From positions 124,001 to 188,000 of IMG/VR virus record IMGVR_UViG_3300033141_006329: a DNA stretch of 64,000 bases, one strand, 5' to 3'. Shown here one piece after another: positions 19,311 through 59,945 of this stretch (position 1 is the stretch's first letter; each line of letters begins with the position of its first letter). The position numbers and the translations under genes are program-made. A model generated the notes under the pieces. It was not told the origin of the DNA and ran no database searches. It worked only from the letters and a program-made list of their open reading frames with translations.

Positions 19311-19322
19311 AAAAATATCTCC

Positions 19323-19757: not shown

Positions 19758-19759
19758 AA

Positions 19760-20152: not shown

Positions 20153-20200
20153 AACTACCCCCTTCCTCAGTTCACAGTAGGATTAAATATCCTTTATGAT

Positions 20201-20515
20201 TTACATAATTTGCCCTTCATCTACCACACTTATCAATAATTCATCCTCATTTGTAGTTACCTCCCCTAGATTTAATATAACATCTATCATACTAGGACCA
20301 TATCGATTTATAGCTTCTGATATAATTATTTTCAATTCTTCTCTAAAGGATGATGTAGTATACAAACGAGTAGTTCCATCATAATAATGATTTAAAATAC
20401 CCCAAAAACCTTCATTATAAAATGTATGAAACAACTCTCTAAAGTCATTATGATATTCATCTAAATTGTCCCAACAATTCTCCCTAAAATTATGCACAGT
20501 AATCCATTTATTCAT
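20201..20515 (-). CDS. Array family protein
   Basis: Paralogue of 24562..24894 (LDEY....ELFHTFY, SFREELKII). Confidence 0.65.
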   Translation of the reverse strand: MNKWITVHNFRENCWDNLDEYHNDFRELFHTFYNEGFWGILNHYYDGTTRLYTTSSFREELKIIISEAINRYGPSMIDVILNLGEVTTNEDELLISVVDEGQIM

Positions 20516-20901
20516 AAGATAATCCCTTCCTCAAGTAATATATTAAGAGCATCGAGAGTAGTTACATGAGGGCTTATATTATAATCATTGTCCATTGGGA
20601 TATTTCGTATTGTATGCACAAGAGATTTGAAACCATAAATATCAATATAGCTTTCCACTAATTCCAGTAGTACTAAAGCAAAATTATCTTTTGATATTTT
20701 AAACCATACGGCATCATTATTTTTTGTAACATTAGTTATAACTATACCCCAACAAATATTATACTCAGGTCCATATCGAAAGCCCCATTTTCTTACAGTA
20801 ATTTTTCTATCATTGTTAAATTTTTTCACTGTATCAACATACGATGAATAATCATTATATACAGCAACCCAGCCTAAATTCTTATAATCTCCTATATTCA
20901 T
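20512..20901 (-). CDS. Array family protein (YEKLGW subfamily)
   Basis: MNIGDYKNLGW; ends LNILLEEGIIL. Confidence 0.7.
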   Translation of the reverse strand: MNIGDYKNLGWVAVYNDYSSYVDTVKKFNNDRKITVRKWGFRYGPEYNICWGIVITNVTKNNDAVWFKISKDNFALVLLELVESYIDIYGFKSLVHTIRNIPMDNDYNISPHVTTLDALNILLEEGIIL

Positions 20902-20921
20902 AAAAACTATCCTTCCATAAT

Positions 20922-21164
20922 TTACCCATCCAAATCTGCATCCAGGTAATCGCCAACCCACCCAATTATAAATACAAGAACAATTGCAAATACCGTAAAG
21001 AAAATACGGTTTGTCATCAGATCCTGAATCATATATCTTTCATAACCACTCTCTACCATATATACAAAGCGACTATAATGCCAAGGAACCCACCAACATA
21101 ATAACCCTATATCTACAAACAATGCTCCCAACTTCCCCTTATGTCTATTTAGAAATTTTATCAT
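20922..21164 (-). CDS. Small membrane protein
   Basis: Two hydrophobic segments. Confidence 0.5.
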   Translation of the reverse strand: MIKFLNRHKGKLGALFVDIGLLCWWVPWHYSRFVYMVESGYERYMIQDLMTNRIFFTVFAIVLVFIIGWVGDYLDADLDG

Positions 21165-21499
21165 TAGTTTTCCTCCAATATTTCATACCAACCACACACC
21201 TCAGCTCTTTCTTGAGCCACAGTTTGTGACATGTCCTCTAACTCCTCATTTGTTATACTATCATCAATCTCAACATCTTCATATTCTTTTTGGTGACCTC
21301 TCCAAGAATACCAATATCTTACTTTCATCTTAATTATCTCCTTACATATGTCCAAGTGCGTAAAATATCCCTGACAATACTGTGGCAATCAAAGCAATAA
21401 ACAACCCATCAATATCCTGTGTCCCTATAGAAGCAATAGCTCCACACATCAAACACCCTATATTTAACATTACCCAATTATTCATTATTTTTCCTCCAG

Positions 21500-21961
21500 T
21501 TAAATAATCATACCACTCAAATCTCCCAATAACATATCAATATCCAGCCTCATAATATTATCGTCGCAACCTATAATATCAGAAACACAATCAGCATTCT
21601 CCATCTTCCTATCTATATAATTCATGATGTCATTTCCTAGTTTTTCCTTCAACGGGAAATGAGAAAGGGTTAATATGTTATCTAAAAATATATTAATCAT
21701 AGCATAAGAGGAGGAGTGATAATAGATACCATTCCTATGTATACAGATATGTACCCCACCTCCTTTTCGTCTTTCTTCTTCTAAAAAGAATATACCCACG
21801 CCGTAGATATTTATAGTGATATACCAATGTTGTGAGATACAAGCTTCCCACACACCAACACGGATATTTTTCCACTCTAATTTATCACGCCGTTTCCTAT
21901 GTACAAATTCATTATCCATAAATTTTCCATCCCTAACTACAGGGAATTCCATCTTCTTCAT
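21500..21961 (-). CDS. Array family protein
   Basis: Ends LDIDMLLGDLSGMII. Confidence 0.55.
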   Translation of the reverse strand: MKKMEFPVVRDGKFMDNEFVHRKRRDKLEWKNIRVGVWEACISQHWYITINIYGVGIFFLEEERRKGGGVHICIHRNGIYYHSSSYAMINIFLDNILTLSHFPLKEKLGNDIMNYIDRKMENADCVSDIIGCDDNIMRLDIDMLLGDLSGMII

Positions 21962-22254
21962 GATTTATTTTCCTTATAGTAATTCTCGATTCTTCTTTTC
22001 TCATCTCTTTCTTTTTCCTCTTCCAAAAATACCTTATCAATAACAGCATCTATACCCTTCTCGATTATACTTCTGACCATTTCGCTATCCTGTCCTTCTA
22101 TTTCTATTATAGACTGTTCTCTTAAAGTTGCCAGCCATCTTTTTCTTTCTTCATATGCACCTGCATCCCAAGCGTCCTGCGCTATTGCCTCTGATCCTCG
22201 AAATCTCCAAGTTAAATTACCTATCCATTTATTCCACCATTCTTTAAATTTCAT
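21958..22254 (-). CDS. Hypothetical protein (not array family)
   Basis: FKEWW...AQDAWDAG; coupled ORF. Confidence 0.55.
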   Translation of the reverse strand: MKFKEWWNKWIGNLTWRFRGSEAIAQDAWDAGAYEERKRWLATLREQSIIEIEGQDSEMVRSIIEKGIDAVIDKVFLEEEKERDEKRRIENYYKENKS

Positions 22255-22619
22255 AATTCTACCCCTCCCTCAATCATAGAGTCCAGAAAGTTATCTTCTA
22301 TCATCTTATGTATAAACTTGAATATGTTTTTTGTTGGTATAAGGTAGATATTATAATCATCTCCTTCAATATATAAAACTCTGTTTAACATATCCAAACA
22401 TTGGACCAAAGCTTCACTGAGTGGAGTATATTCTGGAGAACAACCATTTGTCAATTGGTCAAATAAACCTTCAACTGTTCCAATTATATGATCCTCAATT
22501 TCCTTCACGTGTCCATCTTCAACATAATATTCAATCTCCACCTTAATAATTTCGTTCGCAAGCAATAGAGGTATCAATTCTTCAAAGTCTAATCCTTCAA
22601 CATTAACTATTGTTGGCAT
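22251..22619 (-). CDS. Hypothetical protein with array-type tail
   Basis: Ends FLDSMIEGGVEL. Confidence 0.55.
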   Translation of the reverse strand: MPTIVNVEGLDFEELIPLLLANEIIKVEIEYYVEDGHVKEIEDHIIGTVEGLFDQLTNGCSPEYTPLSEALVQCLDMLNRVLYIEGDDYNIYLIPTKNIFKFIHKMIEDNFLDSMIEGGVEL

Positions 22620-22685
22620 ATTATCTCCTTTTCTTTTTTGAAAACATCACCTGAAAAGTCAAACCAACCTAACGTTCTGTATTTT

Positions 22686-23054
22686 TCAAGATTCATAACC
22701 AACTCCTTGTTCATTATACATACTAAAGATATATTCCACATCGCACCTACTTATAAGAAATTTCTCACTTGCTATATCATAATGTTTTAATATTTTTAAG
22801 AGTGCGTTGAACCCTTTGTTTCTTATAACATGATCTGCTATTTTCATTAATTCCAATCTAAATTCATTACTAAAAATATCAAACCATATTGCTCTACCTT
22901 GGCATGTATGTGATTTCTCGCCTACAATTCCTATATATTTTTGAAGAGCAGATTTTCTTATCCACATCCAATCAGTTGTTGTGCGAAATGATAAATCTTC
23001 AAAACCACATTGTTCCCAACCCCTCATTCTATATTTTTCAAAGTCCACAACCAA
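22686..23054 (-). CDS. Array family protein (FEKY..GW subfamily)
   Basis: DFEKYRMRGW...AIWFDIF. Confidence 0.65.
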   Translation of the reverse strand: MVVDFEKYRMRGWEQCGFEDLSFRTTTDWMWIRKSALQKYIGIVGEKSHTCQGRAIWFDIFSNEFRLELMKIADHVIRNKGFNALLKILKHYDIASEKFLISRCDVEYIFSMYNEQGVGYES

Positions 23055-23427
23055 ACCCCCCCCACATTATATTGATTAATAGATCAATATTAATATCGAC
23101 ATTGTTATACCTTTGCATATAATGATCTAGTATATCTGTAACCATTTTTATATTTCCTCTCTTCTCAGACTCTTCGATAATATCTAATAAAACCAAACCA
23201 AACTTATCAGTTCCAATATCAAACCACATGGAACCAGTTGTCGGCCCATCACTTTTCCCGCTAAGAATACCCCATTCCGGAATGTTGTTCAATTTAAATT
23301 TTCGCAGTAGTATCCAATGATTACCAATTACTTTTATCGCATTTATCCTCTGAGATGCTGTTTTGAAATTACTTAGAGCCCAGCCTTTCTTAGCATACTG
23401 TTCAGATATTATATCCTCTAAATCCAT
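23038..23427 (-). CDS. Array family protein
   Basis: YAKKGW...HWI...WGI...WFDI. Confidence 0.65.
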   Translation of the reverse strand: MDLEDIISEQYAKKGWALSNFKTASQRINAIKVIGNHWILLRKFKLNNIPEWGILSGKSDGPTTGSMWFDIGTDKFGLVLLDIIEESEKRGNIKMVTDILDHYMQRYNNVDINIDLLINIMWGGFGCGL

Positions 23428-23822
23428 ATCGTACCCTCCTCTAAAATTATATCACATACTTTTTCTGCACATACTTTGATAGGATTTGTTGGTATACATC
23501 CTTCTTGTTTGGGATTTTTATTGCGATTCCATATTAAACCTACAACCTCTGAAGTATTATTCTTCTGTTCAGCATCATCTACTATATCCATCAGGATATG
23601 AGGAAAGTCATTATTACTCATATCAAACCATATTGCATTACCATTATACTCGTCGTATAATGGACCTACAATGATGCCCCAATTTGGTATATTTCTTACA
23701 ACAAACCAATGATGACCAGTTTCTTTTACCATATCTAGATTATCAGGATTATATTCTTCAGGGTCATCTTCATTAAGTTTGTTTATTTCCCACCCCTTTT
23801 TCTCATATTTTTCAAAGTTCAT
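23418..23822 (-). CDS. Array family protein (FEKY..GW subfamily)
   Basis: MNFEKYEKKGW; ends IILEEGTIWI. Confidence 0.7.
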   Translation of the reverse strand: MNFEKYEKKGWEINKLNEDDPEEYNPDNLDMVKETGHHWFVVRNIPNWGIIVGPLYDEYNGNAIWFDMSNNDFPHILMDIVDDAEQKNNTSEVVGLIWNRNKNPKQEGCIPTNPIKVCAEKVCDIILEEGTIWI

Positions 23823-24204
23823 TGCAACCCCCTTCAAATATTATATTGATTGTTTTGTTTAGGTCACTATTTATATTGCAAACCTTTATATTATAAGTCT
23901 TTTTATTATAATGAGTTTGAATATAATCTATTAGTGTTTTAATATCTTTAACATTGTAATCAACAACAATATTAAATAAAACTGAAATAAAATCCTCTGT
24001 TAATATATTAAACCATATTGTGACAGTAGTATCCTCTTTAATTTTTCCAATAATAATACCATATTTATAATGTCCATCTAATCTTCCATTTAATTTTCTT
24101 GCAATAACCCAATGCTCTCCAATTATGGTTGATATGTCTATACTATTAATAAACTTATTTTTGCACCCATCCCAACCCTTCTCAATGTATTTTTCAAAGT
24201 TCAT
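23812..24204 (-). CDS. Array family protein (FEKY..GW subfamily)
   Basis: MNFEKYIEKGW; ends IIFEGGCNEL. Confidence 0.7.
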   Translation of the reverse strand: MNFEKYIEKGWDGCKNKFINSIDISTIIGEHWVIARKLNGRLDGHYKYGIIIGKIKEDTTVTIWFNILTEDFISVLFNIVVDYNVKDIKTLIDYIQTHYNKKTYNIKVCNINSDLNKTINIIFEGGCNEL

Positions 24205-24565
24205 AACCATCTCCTTCGAATATTAGATCACACAATTCATCTGTATTTATATCGATACAATGAAGAGAACTACTCATAGAAACTAAGTCTATCAGCCCCC
24301 TAAGAGTATTTTCTTCCTCATGATCTATAATTATATCCAACAAAACAGTGAGGAAATTTTCAGAAGAAATCTTAAACCATATCGATCTTCCAGATCCTAC
24401 ACCTGTCCTACCTATAATTATACCACACTCATCTCCAGTACTAATTCCCCATATCTTTCTTACAATAACCCAATGACTTTCAATTGTTTTTGATATGGTT
24501 ACTGTATTACTGGTAATGTAATCCCGACTGTTCCACCCTAATTTCTCATATTTTTCAAAGTTCAT
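24194..24565 (-). CDS. Array family protein (FEKY..GW subfamily)
   Basis: MNFEKYEKLGW; ends LIFEGDGYEL. Confidence 0.7.
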   Translation of the reverse strand: MNFEKYEKLGWNSRDYITSNTVTISKTIESHWVIVRKIWGISTGDECGIIIGRTGVGSGRSIWFKISSENFLTVLLDIIIDHEEENTLRGLIDLVSMSSSLHCIDINTDELCDLIFEGDGYEL

Positions 24566-24894
24566 AATTGATAACCTCCTTCTAATATCCTCATAAGAGT
24601 ATCATCAATATCTAATTCTATAAATAACTCACATCCAGATAAAAATTCTATGGGGAAATCGTCTAGTTTTTCCACCATTTCAGATAAAATTATCTTTAGT
24701 TCTTCTCTGAATGATAATGGTGCTACTATACATAAATTACCACTATAATTATAATCCTTTACACCCCAGCATAATTTGGTTTTCCACCTACTATAAAATG
24801 TGTGAAACAATTCTTTATGATCCTTATAATATTCATCTAAATTTCTACAGTTTCCACAATAATCATTTATTTTCATCCACCCATTCATTTTCAC
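24562..24894 (-). CDS. Array family protein
   Basis: Ends LDIDDTLMRILEGGYQL. Confidence 0.65.
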   Translation of the reverse strand: MKMNGWMKINDYCGNCRNLDEYYKDHKELFHTFYSRWKTKLCWGVKDYNYSGNLCIVAPLSFREELKIILSEMVEKLDDFPIEFLSGCELFIELDIDDTLMRILEGGYQL

Positions 24895-24897
24895 CTC

Positions 24898-25263
24898 CTA
24901 TAGATTTATTCCTTTATTATATGACTCCACACAAAATCTATCTATATCAAAATTGATATAATTATAAAAATATTTTCCAGATGATATGAAATCGCACCCT
25001 GACAATTGTATAGGATTATTAATGATATTGTATAACTTATGTAATACTCCTTTATCAACATAATCTTGAACTAACCTCTTTAAAACCTTTTCAAAATTCA
25101 AACCATATCCATCAAACACAATAGAAGGAGATAGTGGATTCCAATTCCCCTTACATATAGATATATCCCAATATTCAAAATGAGATGCCCAACAAATACG
25201 AATCCCATATTCCTTGTAATTTGTTTCATGCCACAAATATCTAGTATTTGTCCAGACTAACAA
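24898..25263 (-). CDS. Array family protein
   Basis: W.I.I...IVFD....F..VL core. Confidence 0.6.
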   Translation of the reverse strand: MLVWTNTRYLWHETNYKEYGIRICWASHFEYWDISICKGNWNPLSPSIVFDGYGLNFEKVLKRLVQDYVDKGVLHKLYNIINNPIQLSGCDFISSGKYFYNYINFDIDRFCVESYNKGINL

Positions 25264-25604
25264 TTTGCACCCCCCTCCAATATAATATCCAATGTATCTC
25301 GCATGCTCATCCTAGTGTAACCATAATCGTCATGTAGGTTCACATAGTGAATCCGGTTCAGTAATTCGGCACACCCAAATCTCTCGATATAATCACTTAA
25401 TACATCAAGTAAAATATATTTGAGTTTGTTACCAGTATCCATAAAAATCATAGCTTCCCCACCCATAGATATTTTTCCAATAGATAATATCCAACCATTC
25501 CAACAAGAAGCTTTGGAAATACATATCCAATATTCATCTTTTTTGATATGAGTCCCTGCATAATCCGTAATCCAAGTTAATCCTATATCCTCATTTGATA
25601 TCAT
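25257..25604 (-). CDS. Array family protein
   Basis: Ends LDIILEGGANC. Confidence 0.6.
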   Translation of the reverse strand: MISNEDIGLTWITDYAGTHIKKDEYWICISKASCWNGWILSIGKISMGGEAMIFMDTGNKLKYILLDVLSDYIERFGCAELLNRIHYVNLHDDYGYTRMSMRDTLDIILEGGANC

Positions 25605-25999
25605 AATATTAATCCTCCCATATCGAACATACTATTTAGTATATCTTCCTCAGCCTCAATATTAATATATTGCGCATTGTTGGAGTTGAGATCGCTAATC
25701 ATCTCAAAAAGCTCTTCGAGCTGATTATTTGTTATACACTTGTCCACGATATTCATGAGAGTATCAAAAAAGTTTTTACAACACAACATGAAAGTTATAG
25801 TATTGGTGGAGTTGGTCTGCCACTGATCTTTATATAATGTTAATCTCCAAGCGTCCTTTCCCATATACCATCCAATCTGCATAATATATCTTCCGTGTAT
25901 TTTGTTATAATTCCCTGCACACTCATTCCAACGATCTGTCATATTTCTTATCACTTCTTCGCCCAAATTCTTAAATAAACCCTTCTTTCGAATAATCAT
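25601..25999 (-). CDS. Array family protein
   Basis: Ends ILNSMFDMGGLIL. Confidence 0.6.
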   Translation of the reverse strand: MIIRKKGLFKNLGEEVIRNMTDRWNECAGNYNKIHGRYIMQIGWYMGKDAWRLTLYKDQWQTNSTNTITFMLCCKNFFDTLMNIVDKCITNNQLEELFEMISDLNSNNAQYINIEAEEDILNSMFDMGGLIL

Positions 26000-26220
26000 A
26001 ATATTAATCCTCCCGCAGTAAGTAAATCTAATAGATCCTCAATATGAATACCTATGAAATGTGTTCCACCATTCTTTACGAATTCCGTTCTTTTAGTACG
26101 ATCCGAATTCAATATATCTTTAATCTTTTCTGAGTTTTCAGGTGTAGTTGTCATATCAAAATGCAATGTAGTACCACCATAAAAAACGAAGGTCATATCT
26201 TTAACCCATTTTTTAAACAT
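25996..26220 (-). CDS. Short array family protein
   Basis: Ends IEDLLDLLTAGGLIL. Confidence 0.55.
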   Translation of the reverse strand: MFKKWVKDMTFVFYGGTTLHFDMTTTPENSEKIKDILNSDRTKRTEFVKNGGTHFIGIHIEDLLDLLTAGGLIL

Positions 26221-26539
26221 CCATATTTCCTCCCATAAATTGATTCAAAAGATCATCTATATCAAGCGCGACAGTATCATCACATGCTTGTATTGTTTTC
26301 TTAAAGGTTTCTGAAAAATCATCATATATTTTCTCAATGCATTCGATTATAACATCTCTAAAATTATGGCCAATAATATCAAATATAATATGACCATCAT
26401 TATCTCCGCCGGGCCATTTGATTAATTCCACCCCACTATAAGGATCTCCATCGTCCCAAACTGCAATATCACAACCATGTGTACTATGTATCAGGGCACC
26501 ACATACATCCCAGCCCCAATGAAGTTTTTGCTTATACAT
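26213..26539 (-). CDS. Array family protein (DI.VWD subfamily)
   Basis: Paralogue of next two ORFs; C...V.LDIDD.LN. Confidence 0.7.
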   Translation of the reverse strand: MYKQKLHWGWDVCGALIHSTHGCDIAVWDDGDPYSGVELIKWPGGDNDGHIIFDIIGHNFRDVIIECIEKIYDDFSETFKKTIQACDDTVALDIDDLLNQFMGGNMDV

Positions 26540-26541
26540 GT

Positions 26542-26880
26542 TTATATCCCTCTTCCAATCATGATATTCAAAATATCATCTATATCAAGAGTAACAACAT
26601 TATCACAACTACAAATCAAATCCCTAAATTTATCAATATTACCATCAAATACTTTTTTGATACATTCAATTATAACCTTATCAAAATGTTGGCCGGCAAT
26701 ATCGAATAAAATAAAAGCATCAGTATATTTGTTCCAGTTACCATCATCTATCTCCATGCCACTAACCATTCCGTCAATAGCATAAAAACTATTTTCATTA
26801 TCCCAAACCACTATATCACAATCTGGGAATTCGCAAATAAAATCACCATCTTCTTTAGTCCATTTAAAATTTCTAGTCAT
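26542..26880 (-). CDS. Array family protein (DI.VWD subfamily)
   Basis: FDKVIIECIKKVFD...LDIDDILNIMIGRGI. Confidence 0.7.
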   Translation of the reverse strand: MTRNFKWTKEDGDFICEFPDCDIVVWDNENSFYAIDGMVSGMEIDDGNWNKYTDAFILFDIAGQHFDKVIIECIKKVFDGNIDKFRDLICSCDNVVTLDIDDILNIMIGRGI

Positions 26881-27202
26881 CGCACCCTTCCTCCATCAAA
26901 TCATTTAACACATTATCTATATCAATTATAACTTGAGTATCACATTTTCCTATATGCTGTTGAAATGTATACGCAGAATCAAATATTTCCTCAATACAAC
27001 TGATTAATACTTTATCAAAATTGGGATTATTGATATAAAATTCAATATAATCTATTGTATCAGCAGATTTTCTACATACTAATTCTAGTCCCATGCGGTC
27101 AATACCATCGTTCCATATGATAATATCATAATGTTCTGTAGTATGAGTAAGACGATCATCACCCCATATATCGTTATACCAACTAAGTTTCCTCATACAC
27201 AA
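26873..27202 (-). CDS. Array family protein (DI.VWD subfamily)
   Basis: FDKVLISCIEEIFD...LNDLMEEGCDD. Confidence 0.7.
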   Translation of the reverse strand: MCMRKLSWYNDIWGDDRLTHTTEHYDIIIWNDGIDRMGLELVCRKSADTIDYIEFYINNPNFDKVLISCIEEIFDSAYTFQQHIGKCDTQVIIDIDNVLNDLMEEGCDD

Positions 27203-27350
27203 TCCCGCCCACTACAAAATAATCCAACATAATATCTACGTTATCCTTTATAAAACAATGACAAGGCGTGATTTGTGCTATATATGTACGAGACATCCCT
27301 GCAAATCTATATAAAGGCGTCAGCACCACCTTCTCATTACAATTTTTCAT
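27183..27350 (-). CDS. 55-aa ORF with array-type tail (not in ORF track)
   Basis: AGGAG RBS; MKNCNEKV...VDIMLDYFVVGGIVYEET. Confidence 0.45.
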   Translation of the reverse strand: MKNCNEKVVLTPLYRFAGMSRTYIAQITPCHCFIKDNVDIMLDYFVVGGIVYEET

Positions 27351-27487
27351 AATTTCTCCTCAATAAATCTCACCTTTATTATTAATCAACTGTATCATTG
27401 TCTCTAATTTATATGGAAAATCTACCATATCCTTTCGTGCTAAACCGTCCCAAATTCTATTTTCTTCTTTCCTCCATTCTTTTTCGG

Positions 27488-27823
27488 TCATAATATATTA
27501 TATCCCTCCTCCATAAATTGATTTAAAATATTATATTGACTTATCTGTATATTCAATTCATAAATCTCTTTGACTAACTTTTTAAATTTTTGCAAATTAT
27601 ATTCCTCGTCGCGAGATTTGATAATAACCATTAACTCTTTTCTGAACGATGAAGATTTAATGCAGAAACGGATATGACCAAAACCCGAAGCTGAGATGAT
27701 CCAATCCTTCTCGCTAGGAAACAATCGAAATAATTCAATGTGCTCTTCTCTATAGACTGCATCTGTAGTAATATAACTAGGGTAATGTTTACGGTTCTCA
27801 AAGCTAATCCACCGGCTGCTCAT
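27488..27823 (-). CDS. Array family protein (Y.TTD subfamily)
   Basis: Ends ILNQFMEEGYNIL. Confidence 0.65.
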   Translation of the reverse strand: MSSRWISFENRKHYPSYITTDAVYREEHIELFRLFPSEKDWIISASGFGHIRFCIKSSSFRKELMVIIKSRDEEYNLQKFKKLVKEIYELNIQISQYNILNQFMEEGYNIL

Positions 27824-28151
27824 AACGACATCCCTCCTCCATAAATTTCATCAATAAATCATTGTCATATATTTTCACATTCACTGTTTTATTAATACTT
27901 TTCCGCACTACATATTTAAAAAATTCGACACTCTGACTTATATTCGATTTGGTAATAACTGATTTTAAACACTCTCTAAATAATAATGAAGTGGTATAAA
28001 ATTTAATAACACCTCTTCCAGAACCCGAAAGGATCCAATAATAAGTACCTTGATATATACGTAGTTGATCCCGGCCATTTATCCTAAATGTATCCGTAGT
28101 ATAATAACTTTTGGGAGGACCTTCTTTTTCCTCATTCCAACCATCTATCAT
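27804..28151 (-). CDS. Array family protein (Y.TTD subfamily)
   Basis: Ends LLMKFMEEGCRYEQPVD. Confidence 0.65.
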   Translation of the reverse strand: MIDGWNEEKEGPPKSYYTTDTFRINGRDQLRIYQGTYYWILSGSGRGVIKFYTTSLLFRECLKSVITKSNISQSVEFFKYVVRKSINKTVNVKIYDNDLLMKFMEEGCRYEQPVD

Positions 28152-28461
28152 CTCCTACTCCTTTCACTAATAATATTTCTAATATATCGTCTTTTACTTC
28201 TATATATTTACAAGACTCATCATTCACAATAGGTTCAATTCCGCACTTATTAAAAAATTCAGATAATACTGTTTTTATAACAACTTTTATCTTAGGTGAA
28301 AATATTTTAAATACAAGAATACAATAATTATTGTGTGGAGTTACAACATTCCAACCATCATTATCTGGAAAGAGATTAAATTGTTTTACATCATCCTTAT
28401 AATATCGATCCGTTGTATTATAAGAACAAATAGTATTAGTAATAGATTTCCAACCTGTCAT
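28132..28461 (-). CDS. Array family protein (Y.TTD subfamily)
   Basis: GW......SYNTTD; ILEILLVKG tail. Confidence 0.65.
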   Translation of the reverse strand: MTGWKSITNTICSYNTTDRYYKDDVKQFNLFPDNDGWNVVTPHNNYCILVFKIFSPKIKVVIKTVLSEFFNKCGIEPIVNDESCKYIEVKDDILEILLVKGVGDDRWLE

Positions 28462-28781
28462 AATTCTTCTCCCTCATTTATAATTGTGATTAGTATATCT
28501 AGTTCCAATTTTATACTTGGATAACTATTCATAAACAGATATAGGCTGTCTAATCCATGTTTTTCAATATATTCTGATATAATTGTTTTTATCACTTCTC
28601 TAAAAGATAATAGACCAGTATAAAATTTAATATTGCCTAAGTTTATATGTTTTGATAACAACCAACGATATTCGGTAACATATAGGTATAGAAAATATTT
28701 TTCACCGATCCAATATTTATCACAAGCCGTGTATCTAAAAACTTTATCTGTTAATTCGAGCCAACCGTTGCTATAACTCAT
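28458..28781 (-). CDS. Array family protein
   Basis: Ends LDILITIINEGEEL. Confidence 0.65.
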   Translation of the reverse strand: MSYSNGWLELTDKVFRYTACDKYWIGEKYFLYLYVTEYRWLLSKHINLGNIKFYTGLLSFREVIKTIISEYIEKHGLDSLYLFMNSYPSIKLELDILITIINEGEEL

Positions 28782-29094
28782 ATCCTTTCTCCATCAAACT
28801 GTTTATATTCTCATCGATATTGATTTTCACAACAATTTTATGCAGATTTCTCATCATCATTGTTACACCTTTAAAATCATGAAAAATTTGATCCCCTATA
28901 GCATCACGTATTTCATACTTAAAATCTATGGATGATTTGGGAGGAATCTTGAACCAGAAAAGATTTATAATACAACCGCCTCCTCTAAATACTTCACGTA
29001 GGCTCACACACCAGTAAACATAATCAACCGCAGAGATAGATAGGGTGTGGTCGCCATAATTAAAGCGTATACCATTCTCACATTTTTTCCACAT
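28771..29094 (-). CDS. Array family protein
   Basis: MWKK..NG; paralogue of 30207..30554 (E.RD.IG.QI..DF). Confidence 0.65.
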   Translation of the reverse strand: MWKKCENGIRFNYGDHTLSISAVDYVYWCVSLREVFRGGGCIINLFWFKIPPKSSIDFKYEIRDAIGDQIFHDFKGVTMMMRNLHKIVVKINIDENINSLMEKGYEL

Positions 29095-29455
29095 ATTGCG
29101 CCCCTTCCTCTGACATATTATAAAATAAAGATTCCACACTCATGTCGATATTAATAATAATACCATTGGGATTATGTGTTTTTACAATATTTAACATTTT
29201 TGCACGGAATGTTTCGACTGATTTTGATTTCAAATTCTCATATATAATATCCAACAAAATAGGAATAAAATCATCATTTATATTTTTGAATATAATAGCA
29301 ACGCCACTATAATCTTCGTATCCAATAGCTATTCCCCAACCAGATCCTAATCCATACCTGATTGCTATCCAATATGCCCCTACTCTTGTGCCCATCCCAG
29401 TATGCCCATATTCTACAGACCAGCCTTCCCTTACATAACACGAAATATCATTCAT
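29078..29455 (-). CDS. Array family protein
   Basis: GWGIA.GY.D..G.AIIF shared with 30555..30917. Confidence 0.65.
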   Translation of the reverse strand: MNDISCYVREGWSVEYGHTGMGTRVGAYWIAIRYGLGSGWGIAIGYEDYSGVAIIFKNINDDFIPILLDIIYENLKSKSVETFRAKMLNIVKTHNPNGIIINIDMSVESLFYNMSEEGAQYVEKM

Positions 29456-29844
29456 GTCCTTCTTTCCCTCCCCAATAAAATGTTTCCAATGTATCCTCCA
29501 ATCTCACAGCAATAAAATCTTTATTATTTTTTATAAAGTTATAAAATTTATCATAATTTTTTTCAATAGCCTTCTCAACAATAAGTATTATTTCGCCAGG
29601 AAATTTATCATCTGAAATTTCAAAATCAATACCACCAATAAAAGTGTTACCATTGTCTAATTTCAAACGAAGGGATCCATCAGAATTACTTTCCTCCCAA
29701 AAATCTAAAAAAATACCACCCATCCGTCCACATGATGCAATAATTATTCCCCTCATAAACAAGATCATCACCCTCAGCAGGGCTCATCTGCGCTTTTCCT
29801 TCCTTTATATGAGCATAATATTCATACATCTCATTTGAGTCCAT
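29448..29844 (-). pseudogene. Array family gene apparently split by a frameshift in a T7 run
   Basis: Removing one base from 29707-29713 joins MDSNEMY...DGWY to LDFWEE...FYWGG in one 131-aa ORF. Confidence 0.45.
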
Positions 29845-30220
29845 AACAACCTCCCTCAAAAAATTCTTGTATAACCAAATCAAATACATCATATTTGTAA
29901 TCATAAGATGTATAAGGAGCAATTGTCTCATATAAATCCTCTACAGATCCAGACCTTAAAAATTCTGTCATTAGATCCAATAATATATACATGAAATCAT
30001 AATCATTTGTATTAAATACGATATATTTGCAACCAAAAGCGAATTCAGATCCTCGTATAGTCCTCTTAATATTTGATGTCATTATAGCAATCTTGGTGGG
30101 ACCAAAACTATTGACATCATACATGACCCCTATAGTATATGGATTTTTTTCATAAAAGAATCTTTCTCCATGATCCTTAACGGACCAACCAAAATCAATA
30201 TAATGTTTAACATTGTTCAT
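29831..30220 (-). CDS. Array family protein
   Basis: HYIDFGW; ends IQEFFEGGCYGLK. Confidence 0.65.
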   Translation of the reverse strand: MNNVKHYIDFGWSVKDHGERFFYEKNPYTIGVMYDVNSFGPTKIAIMTSNIKRTIRGSEFAFGCKYIVFNTNDYDFMYILLDLMTEFLRSGSVEDLYETIAPYTSYDYKYDVFDLVIQEFFEGGCYGLK

Positions 30221-30554
30221 ATGACCCTCCCTTCAATAACTCATTCAAACAATTATAGATATCAACATGTATAACCTCATTATAATTATCCTTCATAATA
30301 TCTAGAACACTTTCAAAATCCTGATAAATCTGTTTCCCTATAATATCTCGTAATTCGCATTGAAAAGAATTAGTCATATAAGAAGGCATTACAAATTTTA
30401 TATAAACCATCATCGAGCAACTACCCCTACTATACCAATGCCGATGTTCCAGATATACGCTCTCTTTATATCTATCTTTTTCATATGTTTGCGATATGAC
30501 TATCTCATCTTTATCATATGCGAACCACATGCCATTATAGAATTTTTCCCACAT
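30207..30554 (-). CDS. Array family protein
   Basis: Ends LNELLKGGSYEQC. Confidence 0.65.
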   Translation of the reverse strand: MWEKFYNGMWFAYDKDEIVISQTYEKDRYKESVYLEHRHWYSRGSCSMMVYIKFVMPSYMTNSFQCELRDIIGKQIYQDFESVLDIMKDNYNEVIHVDIYNCLNELLKGGSYEQC

Positions 30555-30917
30555 TTATCTTCCCCTCTCTAATATATCAAAAAGAAATTTATCTATATCA
30601 ATTTTTATATAAACAGTACTACCTATACAAAGATCATTTAGAACTATATCTATCAATGTGGATTCTAACTTATGTAGTGTATTTGTCTGTATATATTGTT
30701 CTACAATATCCAATAATAGAGGAATGAAATCAGTACCAACTTTCTCAAATATTATAGCAAGTCCTTTACAGTCTGTATATCCCATAGCAATTCCCCAGCC
30801 ACAACAATTAACTCCACATATCACAGCCACCCATATATCATCAATATTTTTATACATACCCACCCCATGCCTACTATCAAATATCCAATCATTTCTGCGA
30901 TATTGTTCTAGATTCAC
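30555..30917 (-). CDS. Array family protein
   Basis: Ends IDIDKFLFDILERGR. Confidence 0.65.
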   Translation of the reverse strand: MNLEQYRRNDWIFDSRHGVGMYKNIDDIWVAVICGVNCCGWGIAMGYTDCKGLAIIFEKVGTDFIPLLLDIVEQYIQTNTLHKLESTLIDIVLNDLCIGSTVYIKIDIDKFLFDILERGR

Positions 30918-31216
30918 AATTCACCTCCCTCAGCCATAAAATTCAAAATACTTTCATCGTCCATAAACAGACCACCACCATCATAATTCATAATATTGTT
31001 GATATTCAAATTCACATCATCTATAGCCTTGCGTAAAATATTTTCAAGTATATACATAAAATCATTGTGATATTCTTCATTCATAAGAAAAACAAAACGT
31101 ACTAAAAACGTAATACCATCAGATATATCCAAACCAGGATAATAACCAGTGAAACAATTCCTCAATCCTATATTTATCTGATATTTTTTATAAGGTGTAT
31201 ATATGTTACTAATCAT
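30914..31216 (-). CDS. Array family protein (YPG subfamily)
   Basis: YPG..I.DGI, M.EEYH..FM.IL and MDDESILN shared with next ORF. Confidence 0.7.
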   Translation of the reverse strand: MISNIYTPYKKYQINIGLRNCFTGYYPGLDISDGITFLVRFVFLMNEEYHNDFMYILENILRKAIDDVNLNINNIMNYDGGGLFMDDESILNFMAEGGEL

Positions 31217-31560
31217 TATAATTTCTCCCAATATCCTTCACTCATTATACAATTTAAAATACTTTCATCATCCATCCACATTTTACACAACTCTTTACTA
31301 TTCATCTCATGGATCAAAATCTTCATATTAATATCTATAGAATTAATAGCTTTTTGTAGAGTTGAATTGAGTATATCCATAAATTCAGGATGATATTCCT
31401 CATCCATATAGAAGACAGGAGTAGCTATAATTTCAATACCATCATCTATATACATTCCAGGATATTCAGGACCAGCACAATCTTTCATACATATGTGTAT
31501 ATTGTATTTGCCATATTTTTTACTTTCGTATTTTTCTATCTCATATTCGTACGATCTCAT
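31216..31560 (-). CDS. Array family protein (YPG subfamily)
   Basis: Tandem paralogue of 30914..31216. Confidence 0.7.
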   Translation of the reverse strand: MRSYEYEIEKYESKKYGKYNIHICMKDCAGPEYPGMYIDDGIEIIATPVFYMDEEYHPEFMDILNSTLQKAINSIDINMKILIHEMNSKELCKMWMDDESILNCIMSEGYWEKL

Positions 31561-32308
31561 TATAATCCTCCTTCTTAGGATACCAATTCCATATAGCTTC
31601 TTCTCCCGATCTCTCAGGCAGATATATACCATCCCTTTTATCCAGCCTAACATATTTACATAAAAAATCAACTACCCATCTTCTATCACCTCTCTTATTT
31701 ATTACCTTATTCCGTTCAACTCGCCATACGGCCCCCTCCACCTCATCAATGGCTCCATGGAATCCATACTTACCTAATCTTACCATTATATCAGCCACAG
31801 ATATAGCCCCACCAACATGAAGGATATGAGGAGTTATGAAATCGAATTGTCCTACTCTTGATTTTAAATCATTAAAAAGAATGCGCTTATAATTGGAAAA
31901 TAAATCAAATGTAACAAATGGTTCATGCGTTAGATTATATCTTGTACTATGAGCTTGTGCTAACCACTCTCCGCAAATCCTCTCATCATTATTAAGAAGC
32001 TCATCAAAGCGAGTTCTATTCCTCTCAACCCAATCAGCAAAAAATCGATGTTGTTTATAATCAGAGCTAACGGCTAAATAACCTGCTCTTATGAGAGGGT
32101 ATATTATTCCATCCTTTTTTGCTACACCGACATTTGTTCCGTCCAATTTTTCCAGGACAGTTATTAAATCATGTTCGTCTCTGGTCTTTTTTATAGCTAT
32201 ATTTCCTTGTCTCTCAGGACAATGATGATCACCGTATCCTGTTCTACTGTTGGGTAGATGCGGAATGTGACCATAACATTTAATTCCTAACGGTTTTTTA
32301 GGTCTCAT
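31541..32308 (-). CDS. ATP-dependent RNA ligase family protein
   Basis: Nucleotidyltransferase motifs EKLDGTN, ICGEW, FVTFD, EGAVWR, CKYVR. Confidence 0.8.
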   Translation of the reverse strand: MRPKKPLGIKCYGHIPHLPNSRTGYGDHHCPERQGNIAIKKTRDEHDLITVLEKLDGTNVGVAKKDGIIYPLIRAGYLAVSSDYKQHRFFADWVERNRTRFDELLNNDERICGEWLAQAHSTRYNLTHEPFVTFDLFSNYKRILFNDLKSRVGQFDFITPHILHVGGAISVADIMVRLGKYGFHGAIDEVEGAVWRVERNKVINKRGDRRWVVDFLCKYVRLDKRDGIYLPERSGEEAIWNWYPKKEDYNEIVRI

Positions 32309-32600
32309 ATTGTTTCCCTTCATACATAAAATCAATATCATGATATTCAAAGTAACTATATTTTTCCAATACATTTAAAAATCCACTCTTATCACCCACA
32401 TCAACCAGAGCCTCAATAAATTCTTCCGCCTCCTTAACATCAAAGTTTTTTAACATACCAATGTGTGTTTCGGTCGTTTCTCTCATATCATGATATATAA
32501 TATAACAACCAGGATGATTACATAAAATAACAGATAATTCCGAATTCTCCTGACACGATACCTTATCTTCCCAATGACTATTGATAATATTTGAGTTCAT
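32298..32600 (-). CDS. Array family protein (PGC...LKNFD subfamily)
   Basis: Ends LEKYSYFEYHDIDFMYEG. Confidence 0.7.
   Translation of the reverse strand: MNSNIINSHWEDKVSCQENSELSVILCNHPGCYIIYHDMRETTETHIGMLKNFDVKEAEEFIEALVDVGDKSGFLNVLEKYSYFEYHDIDFMYEGKQYET
32317..32366. repeat. 50-bp repeat, copy 1 of 3 (others 32610-32659, 33919-33968)
   Basis: CCTTCATACATAAAATCAATATCATGATATTCRAAGTAACTATATTTTTC. Confidence 0.9.
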
Positions 32601-33094
32601 AATTCAACTCCTTCATACATAAAATCAATATCATGATATTCGAAGTAACTATATTTTTCCAATATATATTGAAATCCTCCTCTACTGCACCCATTGATTA
32701 ATATCGTGATAAATTCTTCCGCTTCCTCAACATCAAAGTTTTTAAGTATACAAATATGTCTTTTCCCTGAGTATAAAATATAATGAGTCAATAACCAGCA
32801 ACCAGGATATTTGTTCAAGAAGACAGATAATTCTTTGTTCTCACAATACATTTTGTGAGTTTTCCAACTACCAAATCCTACCGCTTTCATAATAACTTCC
32901 CCCTCATTCATAATAATCTCAAATAACTTCTCATAATCAATATTCACAGAATGCATTTGATAATTAGTATTATTAAAATCATCTCGTTCTATAGTGAACA
33001 TCATCTTTACTGCACCACTACCGACTTTCCAATTTCGAATAACCATATCAAATCTCCCTTCAATAATATCATTAACTAATGTAACATTACACAA
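32597..33094 (-). CDS. Array family protein, apparent in-frame fusion of modules
   Basis: Internal tails DIIEGRFD and IIMNEGEVI precede a PGC...LKNFD module. Confidence 0.6.
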   Translation of the reverse strand: MCNVTLVNDIIEGRFDMVIRNWKVGSGAVKMMFTIERDDFNNTNYQMHSVNIDYEKLFEIIMNEGEVIMKAVGFGSWKTHKMYCENKELSVFLNKYPGCWLLTHYILYSGKRHICILKNFDVEEAEEFITILINGCSRGGFQYILEKYSYFEYHDIDFMYEGVEL

Positions 33095-33476
33095 GTTGAT
33101 ATCCCTTCCCCGAAAACCCTTCTAATAACTCATAGATTTTTATCCTTACTGTATGTGGTGATACAGGATGGTGATCATATATTAGGTTGTCAGTTTCGTA
33201 AGGTTTTAAAGTCTGTTCAGACATTAGAAATATAAGATGCTCGTTAAAAGCTTTGTATTTTTTATCCGATAACAATATATCAAATACCAATACCTTACGA
33301 GGGAGGGTATTATGATTAGTATAAAATCTAATTGTTGGAAATGTGTTATTAACCATCATCCAAATCTCATAATATAAATCCTGTAATACATAAGCACCTA
33401 TAGGGCAATATTTCCATGTTACACCATTAATATTAATACTCTTCTCACAGTTATCAGATCCCGATCGATTAATCAT
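33087..33476 (-). CDS. Array family protein
   Basis: INGVTW; ends IYELLEGFSGKGYQLV. Confidence 0.6.
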   Translation of the reverse strand: MINRSGSDNCEKSININGVTWKYCPIGAYVLQDLYYEIWMMVNNTFPTIRFYTNHNTLPRKVLVFDILLSDKKYKAFNEHLIFLMSEQTLKPYETDNLIYDHHPVSPHTVRIKIYELLEGFSGKGYQLV

Positions 33477-33909
33477 ACTGACATCCTCCCTTATAAAAAA
33501 TATCAAAAAGAATATGTAGAGAAGTATGTGCATTATATACTTTTCTGACCCCAGTAAAATCAAAACGATCTATAGGAAATCTATCAATATGCACTAATGC
33601 ACTTCGGCCTATTTCCAATATTTCCCCATGAAACTTGTCATTAATTGGTTTGAATAATATGGACAATATTGTAGTTCTTGGAGATGGCTCATCTTGATTA
33701 TAACCCCATTTTCTTGTAGGATTTACCTTAGAGATATCCAACATCGATATGAATATATACACTATATGTGGTCTGCATACAATACCTGCCTCTAATGTGT
33801 AACCATTGTATTTTCTCTGATATCTGCCAGAAGTTTTGTTCCATTTTATCTCACCCTCTTTTAAGGTCAGATAAGAATAATCAAATATATCAACATACAA
33901 ACTTTTCAT
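33469..33909 (-). CDS. Array family protein
   Basis: Ends ILFDIFYKGGCQYD. Confidence 0.6.
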   Translation of the reverse strand: MKSLYVDIFDYSYLTLKEGEIKWNKTSGRYQRKYNGYTLEAGIVCRPHIVYIFISMLDISKVNPTRKWGYNQDEPSPRTTILSILFKPINDKFHGEILEIGRSALVHIDRFPIDRFDFTGVRKVYNAHTSLHILFDIFYKGGCQYD

Positions 33910-34880
33910 AATTCAACTCCTTCATACATAAAATCAATATCATGATATTCAAAGTAACTATATTTTTCTAGTGTGCGCATGAATTGTTGTTCACCACCGA
34001 CTGCAAACAATGCTACAACGAAATCCTTTGCTGTTCTGATGTCAAAGTTTTTTAACACAGCAATATTTAAAAGAGATGTTGAACTTAGTCGCTTGGTATA
34101 TGTCAACTCAAAACAGCCAGGATATTTGTATAAATTAATAGATAATACGCGATGGTCGTAACTCGTGCAATTATCATACCACTCATCGCCAAATGCCGTG
34201 CCCCCGACACTCTTAAGCTTTTGAAGTTTACCTTCCTTAGTCAAAGATAATAATTTGGCAAATGTATTTACATCGTACCGACCATTAAACGTTTCTATAT
34301 TTTTTAATTTCGAAAGAGGTTCATAAGGAATATCTAATCTCTTATTGAAATCAACACTAAGATATTCTAAATTTTCTAACTTGCCTAGAGTATTCACAGA
34401 AGTTGCCGCACCACCATACAAATAAAGATGTTTTAACGACCTAAGATTTTTTAAGAAAGACATATCCATAATCTCACCGTTATTTAAAGATAAATATAGC
34501 GATTGTAATTGATTCAATTTCCCAATGTGCGACACACAACCAGAACAATTTGTAATTTTCAAAAAAGTCAGATTTGGAAGTAAAGATAAGAAAGGTTTAT
34601 CCCCTAAATCGAAATTTCTCATGGTGAGAGATTTTAAATTACTTAAAGTATTTATATTACTGAGATCCCATTTATCAATGCAATAATTTGCCCCTGATAT
34701 ACTCAATTCTGTCAGAGATTTAAAATATGGTAATATATTCGATAAATCTCTATTATTGCATAATCCAATGCTATCTATATGTTTCAAATGAATAGGTAGG
34801 ATGGTTCCATTTTTTGATAACCCGTTCTTTTTTCTTATCAACCTTCTTGCACTAAGTCCTTCAATGTTTAAACTCTTCAC
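33906..34880 (-). CDS. Leucine-rich repeat protein fused to array-family module
   Basis: LxxLxxLxL repeats, then YPGC...LKNFD...YHDIDFMYEGVEL. Confidence 0.8.
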   Translation of the reverse strand: MKSLNIEGLSARRLIRKKNGLSKNGTILPIHLKHIDSIGLCNNRDLSNILPYFKSLTELSISGANYCIDKWDLSNINTLSNLKSLTMRNFDLGDKPFLSLLPNLTFLKITNCSGCVSHIGKLNQLQSLYLSLNNGEIMDMSFLKNLRSLKHLYLYGGAATSVNTLGKLENLEYLSVDFNKRLDIPYEPLSKLKNIETFNGRYDVNTFAKLLSLTKEGKLQKLKSVGGTAFGDEWYDNCTSYDHRVLSINLYKYPGCFELTYTKRLSSTSLLNIAVLKNFDIRTAKDFVVALFAVGGEQQFMRTLEKYSYFEYHDIDFMYEGVEL

Positions 34881-35200
34881 AATTCAAATCCTCCCTCATT
34901 CATAATCTCTAATACGTCATATAGATCATAATGATCCCCGTTTTTCCTGTTCATGACATCAACCAAATTCTTTATGCTTCTTGTTTCCATAAATGAGGAT
35001 AATATTTTGGCTAATTCGTTGTCAAATCTTTTCGGCATATTGTAAAAATATAGTTTAAGAAATCTTCCACCCCTACTCAGATATACAAGTCTATGATTTG
35101 AAAATGTAAATGACCCAACCCATAAAGAACTTTTCCGATTATTACTTGATATCATATCAGAATGTTTTCCCACACTGCTTTCCTTCCAAATCAATTTCAT
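34877..35200 (-). CDS. Array family protein
   Basis: Ends LYDVLEIMNEGGFEL. Confidence 0.6.
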   Translation of the reverse strand: MKLIWKESSVGKHSDMISSNNRKSSLWVGSFTFSNHRLVYLSRGGRFLKLYFYNMPKRFDNELAKILSSFMETRSIKNLVDVMNRKNGDHYDLYDVLEIMNEGGFEL

Positions 35201-35565
35201 ACCCAGACTCCCTCAAAATAAAATTGTTGTACAAGATGTTCTACAATACATACAGATATTCTTGTATTTGTTTTAATATTTTTTATTAACTCAAGATTCT
35301 CCTCGATAATTATAAAAGGTTGTAGTATATCCATTATCTCACAGTAGAATATATCATTTCCAATATCAAATAAGAAGTATGCACTAGTACTACCATCATA
35401 ACTTATTCTTGCCCACCATGTTTCAGGGGATATTGTACTTAAAGATATGGTAGCATTTACATTAAATTTAGAATTGGTTCTATATGTAATATAACGTTTC
35501 CTGCTATTGTTATTACTATAAGATTTGATTGTCCATGTTATACCATTTCGTTTGAAACGATTCAT
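35197..35565 (-). CDS. Array family protein (first of array)
   Basis: NGITW...WW..I...FDIGND.F; ends QQFYFEGVWV. Confidence 0.6.
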   Translation of the reverse strand: MNRFKRNGITWTIKSYSNNNSRKRYITYRTNSKFNVNATISLSTISPETWWARISYDGSTSAYFLFDIGNDIFYCEIMDILQPFIIIEENLELIKNIKTNTRISVCIVEHLVQQFYFEGVWV

Positions 35566-35722
35566 AAGGTCTCCCAAAAAAATTAAAACTAATAATCCGT
35601 AATTTCTCATTAAAAGAAATTCCCCGCCACGATAATGACAGGGAAATAATATATTATCACATGATATGATATAAAAGGGCTCTACCCCTGAATAGAACCC
35701 TGATTATAAACAGATTGAAATA

Positions 35723-41738: not shown

Positions 41739-41880
41739 ACTACCACAACTTCAAGTTGCAGCTTCCTGCTTCGCTGAAATCCACTTGACAAGGTTCTATA
41801 CAAGCAACCAAGTTAGAGGTTGATCTCTCAGCAGGCGTTGAACTGATGCGTCCCGCACCAGTTTGATTTAACCCTTTATA
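41735..41880 (-). ncRNA. Predicted omegaRNA/reRNA scaffold overlapping tnpB 3' end
   Basis: Position at right end as known for TnpB; 5' boundary approximate; guide would start at 41734 (AACAUUGUUACAGGUUCUAC). Confidence 0.55.
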
Positions 41881-42990
41881 GAGGATGTTCTTTGCAGCAT
41901 GAATGTCACGATCTTTTCTATAACCACAGTCGCAGACGAACATCCTATCTTTTAAGGTTAGTGATTTGTTAATTGCGTTACACGCAGGACATAATTTAGT
42001 GGAGGGATAGTATCTATCTACGAGCCTTAGAGTATGTGACTTTTTCTTTAAGTCACTCATTATTCCTCCAAGGATTGAATGTTGAACTGATTTTCCAAAC
42101 CACTTCTCGCTCCACCCTTTAATATTCTCGTCTTGCACACAGACAATTTTATACTTCTTTGTGATATGCGAAACAATTTTGTTTTTCGCATCTTTCTTCT
42201 GATTAGTTAACTTGTTGTATTTCTTAGCTATCTTCGAATTGAGTTTCCTATTATTCTTAGAGCCTTTCTTCTTGTGTTTCTTCTTTCGTTGAAGACGTTT
42301 TAGACTTTCTGGTATTGGGAATGAGAAGCTATGCTTCTCACCATTATCAAAAGTAAGAGAAGTCTTGATGCCGAAGTCAATGCCTATAGCTTCCTGTTCA
42401 AACACTTTCTCTTCCTTCGGTAAATAGCAAGTGACATGTAAGAAATAATCTTCGCATTTTCGTACGAGGTTCGCTGTTGCAATCTCTGCATTTGAAGGGA
42501 TTTGTTTCAAACCTATCAGTTTGAAACTACCCTTAAATCCTTGCAGCTTGAGATACTTGCCTCGCAGCTTATGCGTACTATTGAATTGCTTCAGATAAAT
42601 GCTATTCGATCTACTCTTGAACTTCAATCTACCTACTTTCTTACCTTTCTTCTTCTTAGCAGATAGTCCACAAATGTTGTGAAACAACCTCTCTCGAACG
42701 CCCTGCTTCATCTGAGAAGAAATCGCTTCAAGCGAACGAGTTTCGGCGATTTTATCTTTTCCGCAAATTGAGATCTCGTTCACTTTAGTATTAAAATTTA
42801 CCGGGTTATCTGTACCTAACATACAATTATACAACCACTTAGCTTCTAAGAATAAACGATCCAGGTACTCTCGTTTTTTCTTGGAGAGATGTGATTTATC
42901 AAACTTCAGCTCGTAAACTTTACAAATCAAAGACTTACGTCTTTCTCTTGTAGCCTTACCAGCCAGTTTGATTCTTTCGTTTTTTGTCAT
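41740..42990 (-). CDS. tnpB: TnpB RNA-guided endonuclease
   Basis: AIGIDFGIK (RuvC-I), YYPSTKLC.AC, C.CG...DRDIHAAKNI (RuvC-III). Confidence 0.93.
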   Translation of the reverse strand: MTKNERIKLAGKATRERRKSLICKVYELKFDKSHLSKKKREYLDRLFLEAKWLYNCMLGTDNPVNFNTKVNEISICGKDKIAETRSLEAISSQMKQGVRERLFHNICGLSAKKKKGKKVGRLKFKSRSNSIYLKQFNSTHKLRGKYLKLQGFKGSFKLIGLKQIPSNAEIATANLVRKCEDYFLHVTCYLPKEEKVFEQEAIGIDFGIKTSLTFDNGEKHSFSFPIPESLKRLQRKKKHKKKGSKNNRKLNSKIAKKYNKLTNQKKDAKNKIVSHITKKYKIVCVQDENIKGWSEKWFGKSVQHSILGGIMSDLKKKSHTLRLVDRYYPSTKLCPACNAINKSLTLKDRMFVCDCGYRKDRDIHAAKNILYKGLNQTGAGRISSTPAERSTSNLVACIEPCQVDFSEAGSCNLKLW

Positions 42991-52691: not shown

Positions 52692-52753
52692 GACTAGGAT
52701 AAACGTTTAGGATGATAATCCTATTTAAAACACTCATAAAAAAGGAGATTATA

Positions 52754-59933: not shown

Positions 59934-59945
59934 TTTTCCTTTACC

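Follow-up and report, generated by a model that had tools for sequence, protein, structure and literature searches.

The 64,000-bp stretch of DNA analyzed here (the window) covers positions 124001–188000 of the 223,370-bp IMG/VR record IMGVR_UViG_3300033141_006329, and its gene P0001 (33906..34880, minus strand) is a genuine gene fusion inside a tandem array of small genes, in which an internalin-class leucine-rich repeat (LRR) solenoid is joined to an acidic domain of about 100 residues that belongs to a subfamily of array proteins. The 324-residue chimera consists of an LRR part (residues 1–224; 34209..34880) and a C-terminal domain (residues 225–324; 33906..34208). About seven LRRs of 21–26 residues span residues ~30–205, and the LRR part ends with a TFNG cap-like motif. 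Pfam LRR_4 matches with 30.5 bits (cut-off 27) and LRR_14 with an E value of 8.7e-10, and PDB sequence matches to LRRs of Roco proteins and internalins reach an E value of 6e-18. The charge of the protein is bipartite; the LRR part is basic (isoelectric point, pI, 9.55) and the C-terminal domain is acidic (pI 4.8).

The C-terminal domain is a member of a five-gene subfamily marked by the motifs PGC, LKNFD, and DFMYEG. It is 46.6% identical over 88 residues to the stand-alone 100-residue product of open reading frame (ORF) 32298..32600 (BLASTP E 1.6e-24) and 42.4% identical over 118 residues to the C-terminal end of the 165-residue product of ORF 32597..33094 (E 8e-22), the last ~97 residues of which align (its subfamily domain is residues 69–165); both genes lie on the minus strand. 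The subfamily hidden Markov model (HMM) scores 168 bits against P0001 residues 225–324 (E 7.7e-52), and 35 alignment columns, including PGC and LKNFD, are invariant across the trio. An earlier note, made by reading the DNA, had proposed both the joining of an LRR solenoid to an array-type C-terminal domain and the motifs common to the three genes, and both proposals are borne out. Three of the five subfamily members lie in the window and two in a second array (L004:1498-1830 and L004:1778-2098), and iterated searching of the genome converges on these five. Run exhaustively with HMMER against 1.84 billion representative proteins, the subfamily profile found this phage's own proteins and five others: three are small proteins on sister-phage fragments (P0007, P0008, and P0010), and the remaining two are long, the one that was inspected being a repetitive surface protein. 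Homologue searches with the P0001 C-terminal domain and with ORF 32298..32600 returned only the proteins themselves or paralogues on the same contig.

P0001 is the third cistron of the array that contains it, following a pair of terminator-like hairpins downstream of a ligase gene; its GTG start codon overlaps the stop codon of the upstream gene, and its own stop codon overlaps the ATG of the next. The same intact ORF is present in a second, independently assembled sample (1 mismatch in 5,447 nt), so the fusion is not an assembly artefact. Homologue, representative-protein, IMG/VR, and JGI metagenome searches found no other instance of this type of fusion; it is thus unique in the databases searched, yet intact in two samples.

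The array that includes P0001 (array 1; 18957..35610, minus strand) is made up of ~45 tandem, mostly translationally coupled small genes (~100–150 residues) of one divergent family, with an RNA ligase gene (31541..32374) breaking the run. Downstream of the DNA ligase gene, a consensus scan places a promoter-like site flanked by a pair of terminator-like hairpins (35620..35701, minus strand), the probable 5′ boundary of the array transcription unit; scans for the T4 late-promoter word TATAAATA and for sigma-70 promoters gave no informative pattern. A second array of the same family begins near the right end of the window (59344..64000, minus strand) and runs beyond it to about genome position 195,000. 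Single linkage of all-against-all phmmer matches joins 45 small ORFs, and 58 ORFs match the family HMM at E<1e-3; the two minus-strand arrays hold at least 55 small, mostly acidic family proteins with a median pI of 4.9. None of them has a match in Pfam, PHROG, NCBIfam, or PADLOC. Directly downstream of P0001, a 146-residue ORF (33469..33909, minus strand) has a family-like tail yet escapes the family HMM, and probably represents a further, very divergent array-family member.

The arrays are hypervariable islands. When array 2 is aligned with a 4.3-kb fragment of a sister phage (L007, a contig of SRR3715733, compared with genome positions 192836..196726), the flanking genes encode proteins that are 99.1–99.6% identical, with nonsynonymous divergence (dN) of 0.002–0.004 and ratios of nonsynonymous to synonymous divergence (dN/dS) of 0.01–0.06. 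The six array genes, on the other hand, encode proteins that are only 66–88% identical (dN 0.06–0.22, dN/dS 0.22–0.58), and one array gene is replaced in the sister phage by a gene whose product is 37% identical. The dN of the array genes is thus ~15–100 times that of their neighbors.

Almost all junctions in the arrays are 1–4 nt overlaps of stop and start codons, and nearly all array genes end in a run resembling a Shine-Dalgarno (SD) sequence (GGAG or GAGG), followed 5–9 nt later by the ATG, GTG, or TTG that overlaps the stop codon. Across the genome, of the 132 genes with a stop that directly adjoins the next ORF on the same strand, 103 have an SD-like word within the terminal 24 nt, vs 55 of the 176 other genes (Fisher p 2e-16), and glycine at residues −7 to −3 is likewise enriched in the coupled genes (p 9e-7). 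Endings of the E-G-G-x-E-L type are therefore at least in part an imprint of the next gene's translation start, and a glycine-rich C-terminus that mostly reflects an SD sequence and the start codon overlapping it says little about protein homology. The glycine is kept even in family members that have a gap after the stop codon, so the motif is not an SD imprint alone. A general caution follows for tightly coupled operons, where the ribosome-binding site of the following gene can leave what looks like a conserved C-terminal protein motif.

Sequence methods do not detectably place the five-gene subfamily in the large array family. The P0001 C-terminal domain scores 1.8 bits against the large-family HMM (p 0.2 against shuffled sequences), and iterative HMM searches within the genome merged neither the subfamily nor the C-terminal domains of the LRR proteins into the large family. 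The weak alignment of subfamily with family is collinear over a strand-helix motif and the C-terminus. A structural model of the family, built from a 28-sequence alignment with a mean predicted local distance difference test score (pLDDT) of 85.5, begins with a short helix and a five-strand meander, continues with two helices, and closes with a short strand and a C-terminal helix; the AF2 model of the subfamily (8-sequence alignment) repeats this order for four strands and two helices and leaves the tail disordered. Eleven of 50 VIA neighbors are common to the two models, that of the subfamily having a pLDDT of only 55.8. These models, together with gene position, size, and acidity, argue with moderate force that subfamily and family share one fold class, short of proof of homology. 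Foldseek found no match to the family model in PDB or BFVD at E<=1e-3. The top structural neighbors of both models, all at noise level, are the TriTu immunity protein (7zhm_D), CdiI (6cp9_B), PsiB (3nct_A), and AcrF1 (6b46_I), and WGR and YbjN proteins also appear among the neighbors of the family model, with template modeling (TM) scores <0.5. Neither a Pfam match nor a structural match clearly above background places the family in the TriTu immunity family (PF24689).

A genome scan of the whole contig finds only two LRR ORFs besides P0001. P0002 (51769..52737, minus strand) has about five LRRs and a TFNG cap, followed by a 127-residue acidic orphan domain (residues 196–322); P0003 (55641..56639, minus strand) has an internalin-like N-cap and 7–8 LRRs of 22 residues, followed by a 128-residue acidic orphan domain (residues 205–332). 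The TFNG cap-like motif thus closes the solenoid in both P0001 and P0002. The LRR_4 scores (P0002, 36.3 bits; P0003, 78.7 bits) exceed the same cut-off of 27, and the identification of both as LRR proteins in the earlier note stands. Its further suggestion, that their C-terminal domains are related to that of the array family, did not reach significance: the two domains do not resemble one another (BLASTP E 11), and neither has a significant profile match to the subfamily or family alignments (hhalign probability <1%).

The reading that confines the array link to P0001, with private orphan domains in P0002 and P0003, has close to an even chance of being correct, falling slightly short of it. 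It agrees with the absence of significant sequence or profile similarity and with searches that return only the proteins themselves. Several weaker signals point the other way. The "style" common to these domains according to the earlier note, an N-terminal Trp and an IK[ND][IV]-helix, does fall on the strand-helix motif of the family in collinear, in-register HMM alignments, although the scores are only 1.5–6.8 bits. Judged against 2,000 shuffles each, P0002 C scores 3.6 bits (p 0.018) and P0003 C 5.2 bits (p 0.012) with the subfamily HMM; with the family HMM they score 1.5 bits (p 0.31) and 6.8 bits (p 0.0145), respectively. The C-terminal domains of all three LRR proteins are acidic (pI 4.7–5.0). 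In ESM Atlas models, the nearest neighbor of P0003 C is a TriTu-family cluster, and those of P0002 C are a PARP-containing cluster (the match presumably due to its WGR domain), a Knl1 RWD-C cluster, and Imm61, with TM scores of 0.42–0.47; these neighbors, all below TM 0.5, weakly suggest that both domains belong to the same class as the family model. On balance, homology of the P0002 and P0003 C-terminal domains to the array family is about as probable as its opposite.

Outside the phage, homologue searches with P0002 C and P0003 C found nothing, and scans of IMG/VR and the JGI metagenomes with five queries (A3, A6, P0001, P0002, and P0003) found no relatives. The sole P0003 match in the metagenome scans (L009) was set aside, as this LRR protein is secreted and encoded on an ordinary cellular contig.

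Met52 is probably the true start of P0002 (position 52584), as GGAGGAA lies 7 nt upstream. In the region 52712..52760 of the window, the divergently oriented tail-sheath gene more likely starts at about 52754, with AAGGAG upstream; these two putative starts would leave a divergent control region of ~170 nt instead of the overlap of the longest ORFs. The stop codon of P0003 overlaps the start of ORF 54535..55644, indicative of translational coupling. This ORF and 57611..58621 (both minus strand) flank P0003 and are paralogues that share a 143-residue C-terminal domain (62% identical); they match DUF7487 and, weakly, REase_MTES_1575 and methyl-directed restriction endonuclease-like proteins, and look like homing-type endonucleases. 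The N-terminal part of 54535..55644 also weakly resembles 49805..50998.

The LRRs are of the 22-residue type of the class 1 internalins, Listeria InlA and InlB, and of related Firmicute LRR proteins. InlA residues 22–161 match the N-cap and LRRs of P0003 with an E value of 2.5e-52 among PDB sequences, and NCBIfam internalin models are the best match for all three proteins, but with at most 92 bits vs a cut-off of 1600 and over the LRR region only. The resemblance ends with the solenoid. Unlike the case in InlA and InlB, no Ig-like inter-repeat domain follows, as the alignments stop at about P0003 residue 195, where the LRRs end, and the Atlas neighbors of the P0003 C-terminal domain are mostly alpha/beta proteins rather than Ig-like folds. 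On visual inspection, P0001 and P0003 have charged N-termini, and no signal peptide and no LPXTG or GW anchor is recognizable; in contrast to internalins, these phage-encoded LRR proteins are presumably cytoplasmic, with orphan alpha/beta domains as their C-terminal halves. The earlier note's statement that LRRs are uncommon in phages is confirmed, as a search with P0003 of 50,697 phage records found LRR proteins only on Listeria contigs that resemble host DNA; internalin-type LRR proteins are thus almost absent from sequenced phages.

What might these proteins do? We tentatively favor, at somewhat less than an even chance for the reading as a whole, the idea that they are diversified binders or inhibitors of host proteins, to which the LRR has been added as a recognition surface. 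Array-family members would be cytoplasmic, non-enzymatic proteins that act stoichiometrically on host targets (defense, toxin, or takeover targets), and an arms race would drive their diversification. In P0001 the LRR may provide an additional or alternative target-binding surface, while the subfamily domain would retain a common contact made through its conserved tail; P0002 and P0003 would be further cytoplasmic LRR binders, whose acidic C-terminal domains are perhaps very divergent members of the same fold class. This reading is drawn from the inhibitor and immunity flavor of the noise-level structural neighbors, the array organization, and the tempo of array evolution.

Known systems offer several parallels. 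The array proteins resemble small immunity and inhibitor proteins (TriTu, CdiI, PsiB, AcrF1) in size (~100–130 residues), acidity, and a beta-meander packed on helices, and the arrays resemble the tandem immunity-gene arrays of polymorphic toxin loci in their rapidly diverging tandem paralogues. The core modules are separated by long stretches of small, coupled genes that look non-essential, as in the hyperplastic accessory regions and multigene families of T4-like and jumbo phages; unlike in those regions, a single family of at least 55 paralogues without a PHROG dominates, and one member has recruited an LRR. The earlier note had pictured a recognition domain plus a common effector. The modular architecture of P0001 agrees with the first half of that picture; the second fares less well, as the shared module has no catalytic family match in Pfam, PHROG, NCBIfam, or PADLOC and its structural neighbors are stoichiometric inhibitors and immunity proteins.

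Several results weigh against the host-protein binder interpretation. The link between subfamily and family is not significant by HMM (2–6 bits) or hhalign (E 0.065, probability 0.85%), and the subfamily model is of low confidence (pLDDT 55.8, as above). P0002 and P0003 lie outside the arrays, near the tail-sheath gene and the endonuclease-like genes. Gene-wide dN/dS in the array genes is <1 and dS is raised, so that recombination may explain part of their divergence. Finally, a predicted complex of the P0001 C-terminal domain with its stand-alone paralogue gave the verdict "no answer" and is evidence neither way.

The conserved tail invites a different explanation. The last 54 nt before the terminal codons (33918..33971 in P0001, 32609..32662 in ORF 32597..33094, and 32316..32369 in ORF 32298..32600, all minus strand) are identical at 51–52 of 54 positions among the three genes, close to the identical 50-bp tail of the earlier note, while the DNA of the remainder of the domain is 46–60% identical. 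They encode an invariant 18-residue C-terminal peptide, and 16 of its 18 codons are identical in the trio vs 50–71% of codons for identical residues elsewhere. Most of the DNA identity is due to the invariance of the peptide together with AT-biased codon use, and gene conversion and a shared contact are the options for the invariance of the peptide itself. The tail was also considered as a nucleotide-level element such as a promoter, and this is unsupported; it fits the consensus at only 9 of 12 positions, and promoter-like sites are no more frequent than in shuffled sequences.

If the shared contact is real, the conserved family domain or the tail could dock on a single hub (a protease, a modifying enzyme, or a phage machine) to which variable bodies, including LRRs, deliver targets. 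Such a substrate-adaptor role would suit a tail that is invariant in three paralogues otherwise 42–58% identical, whose core motif is kept in sister-phage relatives, and which has little order in the AF2 model, as could be expected of a docking peptide; the basic LRR and acidic C-terminal domain of P0001 fit it as well. F-box-LRR proteins, IpaH LRR-NEL proteins, XopL, and the poxvirus ankyrin-PRANC adaptors similarly combine a repeat recognition scaffold with a shared C-terminal module and have expanded into multigene families. However, the tail is present in only five of more than 55 family members, its last residues are dictated by the SD sequence and start codon of the next gene, and neither a hub candidate nor a known adaptor domain was found: Pfam and NCBIfam show no F-box, NEL, U-box, XL-box, or PRANC domain, XopL matches the LRR alone (20 bits vs a cut-off of 500), and a bacterial host, unlike the setting of the F-box and NEL adaptors, does not imply a ubiquitin-like system. 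We consider an adaptor role unlikely. Still less probable is its broadest form, a "plug-in" system in which diversifying bodies and LRR solenoids alike are heads that share a C-terminal docking peptide or domain for a common hub; if true, it would be a bacterial-virus analogue of the F-box and PRANC adaptor families of eukaryotic pathogens.

The fusion could also be a near-neutral accident in which an LRR gene was joined in frame to the next array gene without any combined function. The stop/start overlaps at almost every junction would ease such events, the P0001 fusion is found in no other phage, and there is a candidate for a second case. The N-terminal ~68 residues of ORF 32597..33094 are similar to the C-terminal portion of a large-family member, with the strand motif and an "EGEVI" ending, and family HMM positions 89–113 match residues 43–68 (independent E value 0.033). 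An internal ATG with its own SD sequence is present at residue 69, and the JGI annotation calls a 149-residue product; the ORF seems to be a further in-frame fusion across a coupled junction, if not a remnant that precedes a 97-residue gene. It illustrates how in-frame chimeras arise at coupled junctions and keeps the accidental explanation alive. Against that explanation, both halves of P0001 are uninterrupted and have the same sequence in two samples, no stand-alone copy of the LRR part was found, and no relic start or stop codon is evident where the LRR meets the C-terminal domain; an accident therefore seems to us about as doubtful as an adaptor. Very improbable is a role as virion-borne or surface internalin-like adhesins with C-terminal domains that anchor them to the particle, which could draw on the closeness of the LRRs to internalins A and B, N-cap included, and on the position of P0002 next to the tail-sheath gene, but conflicts with the apparent lack of a signal peptide, Ig-like inter-repeat domain, or anchor, with PDB alignments that stop at the end of the LRRs, with the location of P0001 inside an operon of small non-structural genes, and with the orientation of all three LRR genes opposite to the structural modules.

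The novelty of P0001 lies in the wiring of an internalin-type LRR into a huge, fast-evolving orphan family of phage genes. If that family consists of anti-defense or takeover binders, the fusion would be a natural case of a phage recruiting a bacterial recognition scaffold, and the LRR or the C-terminal domain of P0001 would offer a handle for finding the family's targets.

The source of the window is a large T4-like jumbo myophage with a contig of at least 223 kb. Among the gene products of the window are a T4-type portal, the Gp23 capsid protein, and the tail sheath, together with two ligases (an NAD-dependent DNA ligase and an RNA ligase) and a TnpB-like protein. GC content is uniform at ~32%; this value and the abundance of SD sequences suggest a Firmicute-like host. 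Nucleotide and protein-level searches of the 50,697 phage records with the region and with P0001 found no close relative. A 306,137-bp JGI contig contains the same sequence, with 100% identity at the loci that were fetched. In IMG/VR the record has provirus status, as excised from a longer contig; its composition is uniform, and it is filled by T4-like structural genes and the arrays. The "provirus" trimming is possibly artefactual, and the phage could exceed 300 kb.

Two other genes of the window deserve mention. The TnpB/Cas12f-like gene (41740..42990, minus strand) encodes OrfB_IS605 and TNB domains. A fibre-like gene on the plus strand (4534..9810) encodes 1758 residues with an N-terminal Mtd_N (major tropism determinant) domain and a GH130-like segment; two ORFs on its opposite strand (6785..7009 and 8234..8644) share 86% identity, a sign of a DNA repeat within the gene.
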